Below, in pieces: positions 14,075 through 39,675 of a stretch of 64,000 nt of DNA (positions are counted from its first letter, which is position 1; each line of letters starts with the position of its first letter). This DNA is from Piromyces finnis finn (Eukaryota > Fungi > Neocallimastigomycota). The stretch is taken from contig MCFH01000038.1 of NCBI GenBank assembly GCA_002104945.1, positions 434,001 to 498,000 on the forward strand, given 5' to 3'. Below the pieces are notes generated by a model that was not told where the DNA came from, did no database searches, and saw only the letters and a list, made by a program, of their open reading frames with translations. Both the position numbers and the translations under genes were made by a program.

Positions 14075-18036
<3,962 letters not shown>

Positions 18037-35620: not shown

Positions 35621-38227
35621 ATTTATCTAATATTACAATAATGAAATTTCTTTTATATAAAATAACTATAGTATATATCTTTTTTTAATATTTCAGTTAA
35701 TATTATAAAATTTTTCTGATTTTTTGTTTTTGTTTTGTTTTTTTAATTGAGAGAAAATGAATATATTAGTTTTATTGTTAAGTATCCCAATATTCAAAAT
35801 TATATATATATATCAAAATATATAAAATAATTAATTTAATAAAAATAAAAACATATAATAAAAGCTATGTAAATAAAAAGAAATAATTACCTTTTAATAG
35901 TCTTTTATTTTTAATATTTACTTTTTGTGTATATTTATGTTTTATTGGTGTTTGTTTGTTTTTTCTAAAGTTATTATCTTTTTCAATTTACTCTAACTTT
36001 TTAAAATATATATATATCATTTCTTTTCTTTTGAAAAAAAAAAAAAAAAATATTGAAAATGAAAATCTTAAATTAGAATAAATATTAAGAATTACTATTA
36101 TTTAACGATATTTAAAGTAATTTCAAATGTTCTAATCGAATAATTATAAAATGAAATGTTAAGAAAATATATCTTAAGTAATTTTTAATAAAAATATTCA
36201 CTTTTTTTTAAAAAAAAAATAATTGTATGAATTTATTATTCTTTTATTTTAAACTCATGATATTATATTTTAATATATTAATTAATGTTTTTTAGTTTTC
36301 CTTATTGTAATAATAAAGTAAAATGAAATAAAAAAAAAAGGAATATTTTTTTTTTTACTAATAATACAAAAGCAAAATCAAAATAATAGAATTTTTATTT
36401 CTTTTTTTTTTTTTTTTTAATTTTGTTGTTGTTTTCTTTGGTTGTTCAAAATTTTTAATTAAAAGCTAAAAAATAAAAAAAAAATTTGCATGCGCATTAA
36501 ACTTTAAATTATAATAAAAAGTACAATGATTGTTTTTATTTTCAAAATGATGATTATTATGTTTTTTATTATTAAAAAAGATAATTAAAAAAAAAAAAAA
36601 AATAACATATCATTACTTTTTACTTTAGCTTTATTTCCAGTTTATTTATTAAATAAAAATTTTACCAAAAACAACTAGTAAAAAAAAAAAAAAACAATCT
36701 TAAAATATAAAAATATAAAACAAGGATAAATCTACAATATTGATTTTATATACCTAAGTCTTACTTTTTTTAATTGTAAAATAATATTTTTATTTAATTA
36801 AAAAATTAAAGTAAACTCTTAATTAATTTTTTTTAAAAAAAAAAAAAGTATATGATTTAATCTTTTTGGTTTTATTATTAATATTCAAAACAAAACCTTT
36901 TCTTCTAATAGAATTAAAATAAAATCAATACTATCTATAAAAATAAACATTCTTTTTTATAAATTGTAAACATTATGAATTATAATAATGAAATCATATA
37001 TATTTTTATATTTTTATTCAGTTATGTTCATATTTTTGATTATATATCTAAAAAGTAATAAATAATAAAATAATTGATTATTCCTTTTTTTTTTTTTTTT
37101 TTTTTTTTTTTTGTTTATTAAAATAAAAGTTTAATAATTTTAATTTTACGAAAATGAAATAAATAAAGAATGTATAAAATAATAGAATTTCAAGATATAT
37201 TAAACTATAAGAACATAAGAATATCATTGATAAAAAAAAAAAAAGAAAAGAAATTATATATGTTATTATGTCATTATAATAGAATAACTAAGTCTTTTTT
37301 TTTTTTGTAATATTTAAAAATTAAAATATATATTTGTATATCAATCTTAGTTTAAAGATTTTATTTTCATAATAAAACTGCGTAGTATTTATATATAGAA
37401 ACTTAACCTTAATTTCGAAATTTTATTTAATGTTATTATTTATTATTATTTATAGTATTAGTGTTATTATGATAAATTAAATGTTTTTAAAAATACTTAT
37501 ATTTAATTGTAATAAATTGCAAGATAAAAAGAAAAGATAAACTGTAATATGCTTTTTTTTTTTTAAAAATATATATACAAATATAATAAATATTATTATT
37601 ACTATTACAAAAATATAAAGATATTAATATTTCAATCTTTTTTTTTTTCTGCATTTTCATGAACATTAGTTATATAGGTTAAGGAATAGGTTAAGGAATA
37701 GTTTATGTTTTGAAATTTTTTTTTTTTTTTCATTTCAATAAAGACTATTATTAAAATTATAATAAATAATATTATAAAATATATTATTTTGTTTTTCATA
37801 ATAGTTATGAGTATAAATAATAGTTTTTTATAAAAGCTATTTTAAATGTAAAAATTATAAACATAAAAACCAATATGCCAAATATTTTAAAATTATTTTT
37901 ATTCTTCTTTTTTTGAATCATTAAAAGTAAATGAATTGTAGTATGAAGATTAAATCTTAAATAAAAGAATATTGTACTTAAAATAAATATAATATTTATT
38001 TCTCTCGCCTTTTTTGACCATATTACAAATGTTTTTTTATATTGTTTGATACTACTTCTAGTAAAAAATTGATTCTTAAATCTTTTTTTTTTTTTTTTAA
38101 TTTCTTAATCTTTTTTTATAAATTAAAAATAAATTAAAAATTTTTATTTTATTTATATTTAAAAAAGTGTAAAATCAATCTTTTAAAATAATAAACAAAA
38201 TAAATAAAATAAATAAATAAATAAAGA

Positions 38228-39675
38228 ATGGTAAATTAAAAATAATGAAAAACAAAGAAAAGAATAAATTATATGTTTTTACTTTTAATTACATATTATT
38301 TTACTATAATAAAAGAATATATTGTTTTTAATATTTTTTATAATTAAAGAAAAAAGAGAGATATTTATTCTAATTATATAGTATTATTGAACAAATATAT
38401 CAAAATTAACATTTTCATTTTTTATTCAATACACTTTTCATTTTATATAATTGATAATATTATATGTATAAATTATTTTTATAGAATACCAACGTTTTTA
38501 AAATTGACCCAGAACTTACCAAGTCTATTAAAAAGTTCAGAACTAGAAGAAGCAAGAATCACACTGCTTTATTAAGTAAAATGAAAAAAAAAAAATTCTT
38601 TTAATATAAATTACTATATTCAATTTCAAATTATTAATTATTGTTTTCATTTTTTTTTTTTATTTTAATAATATACAACTTTGGTATATAAATTGAAAAT
38701 TATATTCATTATTATTATATATAATTTTTTTATTGATACTTTAAAATTAATTATTTTTATTATAATTACTATTCTGTGATGAAATTCCAACATTTCGAAA
38801 TGTCAAAATTACAGTTAGAATTGATGAAGATAATCTTGTCATCGAAGAAGTAGATATATAAAGAAAAAAATTCGTTTTAATATTTGTTTTTTTTAAATGT
38901 TAATAAAATTCTTTATTTTATTTTCATTGTTTTTTTTTTTTTTTTTTTTTACAAAATGATAGGATGAATTAATTGAAGATGTTGACCTTGATAATTTCTG
39001 TGATGAATTACCAGATGTAGATCCAAGATATCCTTTTCATAATTAATAGTGTTAAATTTAATTAATATATATTCACTTTTTTCATAAATTCTATTATCTA
39101 ATTTAGTATCTTTAACTTTTTAATTTTTTTTTTTTTAATTTGTTCTTTTTGGGTGTTTACATATATTCTCTTATCTTATAATAGAGTTCATGAAGATGGT
39201 CGTCTTTCAAATCCATTGATTTTCATTTGTTATATTCCAGAAGGTTTATAATTTTAAATATTAATTTATTTTTTTTTTCAAATATATAAATCATCAAAAT
39301 ATATTAAGATATAATATCAATAATAATGGAAAATGATATATTCATTATTTTTTTTAATTGGCGATATTATTAAAATAAAGCATTACTTATTGTTTTTTAT
39401 TTTTTATATATATATATAATTTTTTTCTAATATACATTCACTACTCTCTTCCAACTTTTTAGGTATTCCAACTCAAACTACTATGCTTTATAGTTCTGCC
39501 AAGAATCTTGTTCAAAATGAATCCTTAATTAACGGAAAAGTAATAACTAATCCTTTTTATTCCTATTTTATACTTTATTTATTAATACTTTCATTTTATT
39601 AATTATATTTCATAGGCTCTTGAATTAAGAGATGCTACTGATTTTGATGAAGAATGGTTACTTTCTCAAATTTAA
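38228..39675 (+). CDS. gmf1: Glia maturation factor (ADF-H/cofilin fold, Arp2/3 regulator), 7 exons
   Basis: Exons 38228-38230 (ATG only), 38485-38575, 38815-38849, 38963-39027, 39161-39243, 39463-39539 and 39616-39675. They give ..KKFRTRRSKNHTALLIRID..DELPDVDPRYILLSYNRVHEDGRLSNPLIFICYIPEG..MLYSSAKNLV..LELRDATDFDEEWL, matching the GMF consensus. Confidence 0.92.
39028..39160 (+). other. U12-type (minor spliceosome) AT-AC intron
   Basis: 5' end ATATCCTTTT (U12 consensus RTATCCTTT), 3' end TTTAC and candidate branch site TCTTTAAC at 39109-39116. Removing it restores the conserved PR|YILLSY motif in frame. Confidence 0.88.

Follow-up and report, generated by a model that had tools for sequence, protein, structure and literature searches.

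The segment 39028-39160 of the window (the whole 64-kb stretch of Piromyces finnis DNA that was analysed, 20% G+C) is, with a probability that we put at about 0.9, a genuine U12-type AT-AC intron, the fourth intron of the single-copy P. finnis gene for the actin regulator GMF (glia maturation factor). A preliminary description made from the letters of the window had proposed a U12-type AT-AC intron in GMF over exactly this interval, and both its coordinates and its statements about the sequence proved correct. Its core reading is well supported by a textbook 5′ splice site, by a branch motif core identical to that printed for human GMFB intron 4, and by a position and phase that agree with cod, Conidiobolus and human GMFB.

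The GMF (ADF-H) gene runs from 38228 to 39675 on the plus strand and is divided into seven exons by five GT-AG introns and the AT-AC intron 4 (Table 1). When a splice-aware search was allowed GT-AG, GC-AG and AT-AC introns and was required to yield the GenBank protein ORX45814.1 (Piromyces finnis), it returned one solution. The spliced product of 137 aa is letter-for-letter ORX45814.1, and the interval 38228-39675 is identical to the public gene on GCA_002104945.1 MCFH01000038.1 (locus L006:1501-2948). The protein matches Pfam Cofilin_ADF over residues 14-135 (2e-24); its closest PDB structures are GMF-gamma and GMF-beta (7e-25 to 1e-24), with cofilin and actophorin reaching only 1e-9 or weaker. 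It consists of one ADF-H domain of about 140 aa and resembles GMF more closely than cofilin or twinfilin, which places it in the GMF subfamily; its alignment to GMF-gamma and GMF-beta is free of gaps over the exon 4/5 junction (...ELPDVDPR/YILLSY..., the slash here and below marking a splice junction). A protein search recovered GMF beta from Anaeromyces robustus and Neocallimastix, and ORX45814.1 was found in the 90% cluster of the A. robustus protein. An intron directly after the ATG, in phase 0, is common to the GMF genes of gut fungi, Gonapodya, Conidiobolus, sponge, abalone and cod (loci L001, L002, L008, L013 and L016-L019).

Table 1. Coding exons and predicted splice signals of the P. 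finnis GMF gene, with the corresponding AT-AC introns of other species. Plain positions refer to the window; positions with an L number refer to the locus of that number.
Feature	Position	Strand	Description
Exon 1, coding part	38228..38230	+	ATG only, then GT-AG intron; splice-aware search, single solution
Exon 2	38485..38575	+	NTNVFKIDPELTKSIKKFRTRRSKNHTALL; phase 1 at end
Exon 3	38815..38849	+	IRIDEDNLVIEE
Exon 4	38963..39027	+	DELIEDVDLDNFCDELPDVDP + AG of Arg codon; words present in RNA runs
Intron 4	39028..39160	+	133 nt, AT-AC, U12-type, phase 2 within Arg codon of PR/Y; between exons 4 and 5
5′ splice site	39028..39037	+	ATATCCTTTT; U12 consensus /RTATCCTTT
Best branch-site motif	39109..39116	+	TCTTTAAC; 44 nt between motif and intron end; in block TATCTTTAAY
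Candidate branch positions, best motif	39114/39115		UCUUUAAC
Weaker branch-like motif	39132..39139	+	TTTTTAAT; 21 nt from intron end; not conserved in A. robustus
Candidate branch positions, weaker motif	39137/39138		UUUUUAAU
GGGTGT	39151..39156	+	can pair with 5′ site AUAUCC (4 Watson-Crick + 2 G-U); post hoc observation
Terminal AC	39159..39160	+	3′ end of intron 4
Exon 5	39161..39243	+	A of Arg codon + YILLSYNRVHEDGRLSNPLIFICYIPE + G; words present in RNA runs
Exon 6	39463..39539	+	
Exon 7, coding part	39616..39675	+	with TAA stop
A. robustus GMF AT-AC intron	L001:4096-4246		ATATCCTTTT...ATATTAC
C. coronatus GMF AT-AC intron	L016:832-917		ATATCCTTTT; 86 nt
Cod (Gadus morhua) GMFB intron 4	L018:1806-2254		AT-AC; ATATCCTTTG; 449 nt

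Exon 4 closes with ...GATCCAAG at 39027, the intron closes with ...GTGTTTAC (TTTAC) at 39160, and exon 5 opens with ATATATTCTC at 39161; the AG of exon 4 and the A of exon 5 make up an Arg codon, which is followed by Y I L L S Y. The intron termini form a matching pair, with AT at 39028-39029 answered by the terminal AC, and the 5′ site conforms to the published U12 consensus /RTATCCTTT (PMC2846911). By established knowledge of U12-type splicing, the U11 snRNP and later U6atac would pair with the 5′ site AUAUCCUUUU, U12 snRNA would pair with the UCUUUAAC-type branch site and bulge an adenosine, and excision between G39027 and A39161 would restore the Arg codon AG/A of the conserved PRY motif.

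The core of the 5′ site is not rare in the window, where RTATCCTT occurs 14 times against 8 expected. Those of the other occurrences that were examined either fall within coding sequence or run antisense to (long) open reading frames, and among all RTATCCTT sites only the one at 39028 coincides exactly with the point at which the GMF alignment is interrupted and picks up again. At 15611-15720, ATG/GTATCCTT could be taken for an initiating ATG with a U12-type GT donor right behind it; this segment lies within a coding exon (frame GILICLDSFLYTFTILPIRLVV...) and is therefore not an intron. The exon in question belongs to a multi-exon membrane-protein-like gene.

We rebuilt gene models for distant GMFs from an exhaustive search and compared their intron positions in a MAFFT alignment. 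Four AT-AC introns, from P. finnis, A. robustus, Conidiobolus coronatus and cod GMFB, fall on the same column of this alignment (column 69) and in the same phase 2, within the Arg codon of PRY or PRF. The introns of A. robustus, C. coronatus and cod all have ATATCCTTT 5′ sites, and over ten bases the site is identical in the three fungi, with ATATCCTTTG in its place in cod. The C. coronatus intron thus interrupts the same codon in the same phase and with the identical ATATCCTTTT; unlike that of P. finnis, it has branch motifs at the textbook spacing (TCCTTAAT and TTCTTAAC, 19 and 12 nt from the 3′ end). Cod GMFB intron 4 also differs from the P. finnis intron, both in its length and in its canonical branch motif TTCCTTAAC, which lies 12 nt from the 3′ end. 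Besides the AT-AC intron, cod GMFB has three of the six P. finnis introns at the exact column and phase, and its third intron is five alignment columns off the fungal one.

The same position appears to be occupied in human. Intron 4 of human GMFB is a minor intron that has been used in minigenes, with printed ends TCG/atatcc ... ttctttaacttgagaaaaac/CTT (Meinke et al. 2020, eLife, PMC7244321). Read from these short printed ends, the codons would be CCT CG/C TT., which would place the intron in the same Arg codon and phase of QPR/F, and the positional orthology of the P. finnis intron with U12-type introns thus extends from A. robustus, C. coronatus and cod to human GMFB (PMC7244321). A U12-type intron at the PR/F phase-2 position of animal GMFB, suggested as a check in the preliminary description, was accordingly found in cod and, by this reading of its ends, in human. 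The human intron resembles that of P. finnis in its AT-AC termini, its ATATCC 5′ site and its branch core TCTTTAAC, and differs from it in branch spacing, with the motif 11 nt from the 3′ end in human as against 44 nt in P. finnis. The host genomes differ as well, that of P. finnis being an extremely AT-rich fungal one, unlike human.

A complementary picture comes from Neocallimastix, in which two GMF paralogues are represented in three assemblies (L002-L004 and L007-L009). In both, the AT-AC intron is precisely absent and the other five introns are kept, and genomic DNA and cDNA contigs alike are continuous across the site (...GATCCAAGATACATT... and ...GATCCAAGATACATTCTT...). That both paralogues lack this intron and retain the other five points to a loss before the duplication. 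Four intron-less gut-fungal GMF cDNA contigs (L005, L010, L011 and L012) also read as the AT-AC product; two of the four are exact matches to the Neocallimastix paralogues and two come from other gut fungi. In L005, a contig from JGI 3300037879, a WD40 open reading frame of 599 aa precedes a fully spliced Neocallimastix GMF, and the contig is probably a chimeric transcript assembly.

At the PR/Y or PR/F position, the MAFFT alignment shows an uninterrupted GMF gene in Gonapodya, Synchytrium, Allomyces, the sponge Oscarella and the abalone Haliotis. These sequence comparisons show intron 4 to be an old opisthokont minor intron that has been kept in P. finnis, Anaeromyces, Conidiobolus and vertebrates and precisely lost in other lineages, which are both Neocallimastix paralogues, Gonapodya, Synchytrium, Allomyces, the sponge and the abalone. 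A chance match to U12-type signals is excluded for intron 4, because AT-AC introns are present in the orthologues and the Neocallimastix genes read through the site without one.

The branch region is where the P. finnis intron departs from the textbook. Its best motif, TCTTTAAC, is a TCCTTAAC-type motif with one C-to-T change, a transition, and such a variant could still wobble-pair with U12. The preliminary description had reported a branch-like motif about 45 nt from the 3′ end, and the spacing is indeed 44 nt; the A. robustus counterpart, TCTTTAAT, lies 32 nt from the 3′ end. Apart from the two ends of the introns, the block TATCTTTAAY is the only internal one conserved between P. finnis and A. 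robustus. Neither distance is short by the standard of U12-type introns, in which the branch site usually lies less than about 20-25 nt from the 3′ end, although this is a typical property and not a strict definition. A published optimum is 11-13 nt (PMC3584512), and the branch motif of human GMFB intron 4, ttctttaac, has a core identical to TCTTTAAC (PMC7244321). Older U12 predictors scan only from -40 to -5 (PMC2846911); the branch search of intronIC covers -55 to -5 (PMC7367187), so it would still detect the motif at 44 nt.

The preliminary description had gone further and suggested a U12 architecture peculiar to the lineage. Of that suggestion, the distant motif itself stands and is common to A. 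robustus, while the architecture is unproven. We consider it unlikely that intron 4, as a U12-type intron, has a 3′ architecture specific to its lineage (distal branch, T-rich spacer and a GGRTRT hexamer) implying altered 3′-site selection in anaerobic gut fungi. What speaks for such a reading, besides the sole conserved internal block at 44 and 32 nt, is the hexamer: the GGGTGT of P. finnis is matched at the corresponding place in A. robustus by GGATAT (L001:4238-4243), which can form six Watson-Crick pairs with AUAUCC. Each hexamer ends 3-4 nt short of the 3′ end, for which the chance is about 0.5-1% per species, the species not being independent, and GGRTRT is scarce in AT-rich sequence here, at about 2e-4 per position. 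Against it, the comparison is one of two related species, the hexamer was noticed post hoc, the weaker TTTTTAAT of P. finnis lies at 21 nt, and the distant motif remains within the intronIC window. There is no GGRTRT-type hexamer in the Conidiobolus intron, and the sole copy in the cod intron is far from its 3′ end.

The stretch between TCTTTAAC and the 3′ end is T-rich and without AC or AG. As a sign of scanning for the 3′ site, this absence is not significant for the composition (P about 0.19 and 0.23), and RNA folds that might link the branch motif to the 3′ end were no better than shuffled sequences, with none significant. U12-type introns are said to have no pyrimidine tract; the T-run may mean little here because the genome is about 80% A+T. 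We hold it improbable that the minor introns of anaerobic gut fungi use a relaxed 3′ architecture, in which a T-rich spacer would separate a branch site at 30-45 nt from the 3′ end and a GGRTRT hexamer just before that end could pair with AUAUCC. If they did, the measuring of the minor spliceosome from branch to 3′ site would not be universal. The distant branch motif common to two gut-fungal genera is the one part that may merit more work, and if the spacing were general, gut fungi would offer a natural test of 3′-site choice by the minor spliceosome.

The major (U2-type) spliceosome also handles a small class of AT-AC introns, and AT and AC termini, which intron 4 has in common with that class, leave the class undefined by themselves. 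The T-rich stretch and the distant branch motif also resemble a U2-type 3′ region more than a textbook U12 one. We nonetheless judge removal by the major spliceosome very unlikely, given that the 5′ site ATATCCTTTT is of U12 consensus and not U2-type, and that the U12-like TCTTTAAC is conserved with A. robustus; U2-type AT-AC introns have neither the ATATCCTT 5′ site nor the TCCTTAAC-type branch motif, both of which are present in P. finnis intron 4. In the cod and Conidiobolus orthologues, moreover, canonical U12 branch motifs are located 12-19 nt before the end of the intron, and the human orthologue counts as a minor intron (PMC7244321).

To return to the U12-type AT-AC intron and its boundaries, we enumerated all in-frame, stop-free donor/acceptor pairs between exons 4 and 5. 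The claim of the preliminary description that no GT-AG parse keeps the frame holds in substance and not to the letter: two GT-AG parses have an open frame (donor 39000, acceptor 39186 or 39195), and they lose 17-20 residues, PRYILLSY among them, that do not vary among gut-fungal GMFs and are conserved as far as animals. Three other AT-AC pairs remove or add residues, and retention of the intron leads to a stop after six more codons (RYPFHN). On this enumeration, the AT-AC parse at 39028-39160 is alone in being predicted to give a protein collinear with GMF orthologues.

RNA data bear on the same question. A word index was queried with 22 sampled words from 38963-39243, which covers exon 4, intron 4 and exon 5. 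The share of these words present was 1.00 in a DNA run of the same organism and 0.36 in four RNA runs from three studies, a figure that does not locate the junction. Words lying wholly within exon 4 or exon 5 number 88 of 251, so that 0.35 is expected for an exon-only transcript, compared with 1.0 for retention and about 0.14 for the GT-AG alternatives. Across the entire gene region, 0.19-0.21 of the words are present in the RNA runs, about the exonic share. The segment 39028-39160 is thus absent from the assembled transcripts, the exact junction lying outside what word shares show. We give almost no credence to the idea that the AT-AC parse is an annotation convenience, with the transcript instead using GT 39000 and AG 39186 or 39195 or retaining the segment: two such parses do have an open frame, but they would remove 17-20 conserved residues, retention would bring the early stop, neither expected word share fits the one observed, and the Neocallimastix genes and the four spliced gut-fungal cDNA contigs match the AT-AC product.

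Among metagenome contigs, a search with an alignment of five GMF proteins gave no match, and one with an exon-5 DNA pattern recovered one cDNA contig, from another gut fungus, and no P. finnis cDNA. The C-terminal half of GMF, used as a query for mis-modelled fragments in other gut-fungal genomes, found none. The expectation that automated annotation would mis-model such a gene was not borne out, as the product of AT-AC splicing is exactly what GenBank gives under ORX45814.1 for P. finnis and under ORX77204.1 for A. robustus.

Intron 4 of GMF is in fact already known, through the public gene model and the published minor splicing of P. finnis. It is already annotated, since ORX45814.1 equals the spliced model, and it has stood in GenBank gene models since the original genome annotation; as a discovery it carries little weight. 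The intron does imply a minor spliceosome in an anaerobic gut fungus, as the preliminary description had argued, but this is not new: Larue & Roy 2023 (NAR, PMC10639083) report both minor introns and minor snRNAs for P. finnis, which they mention by name. Their survey scored annotated introns, and the GMF intron is an annotated one. The accessible text lists no individual introns and gives no branch-site spacing for Neocallimastigomycetes, and the accessible part of its supplementary material holds nothing on these species or on GMFB (PMC10639083). An Rfam scan of the 64-kb window found no snRNA. What the GMF gene offers is a clean worked example of a minor intron that gut fungi, Conidiobolus, fish and human have all kept at one codon, with an exact loss in Neocallimastix.

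The surroundings of the gene deserve brief mention. An AT-rich low-complexity stretch (38114-38150) precedes the start codon of GMF by about 80 nt. Downstream, the neighbour of GMF is a SprT-like/SPRTN gene in P. finnis (from about 40356 of the window onward) and a Hep_59 gene in Neocallimastix.
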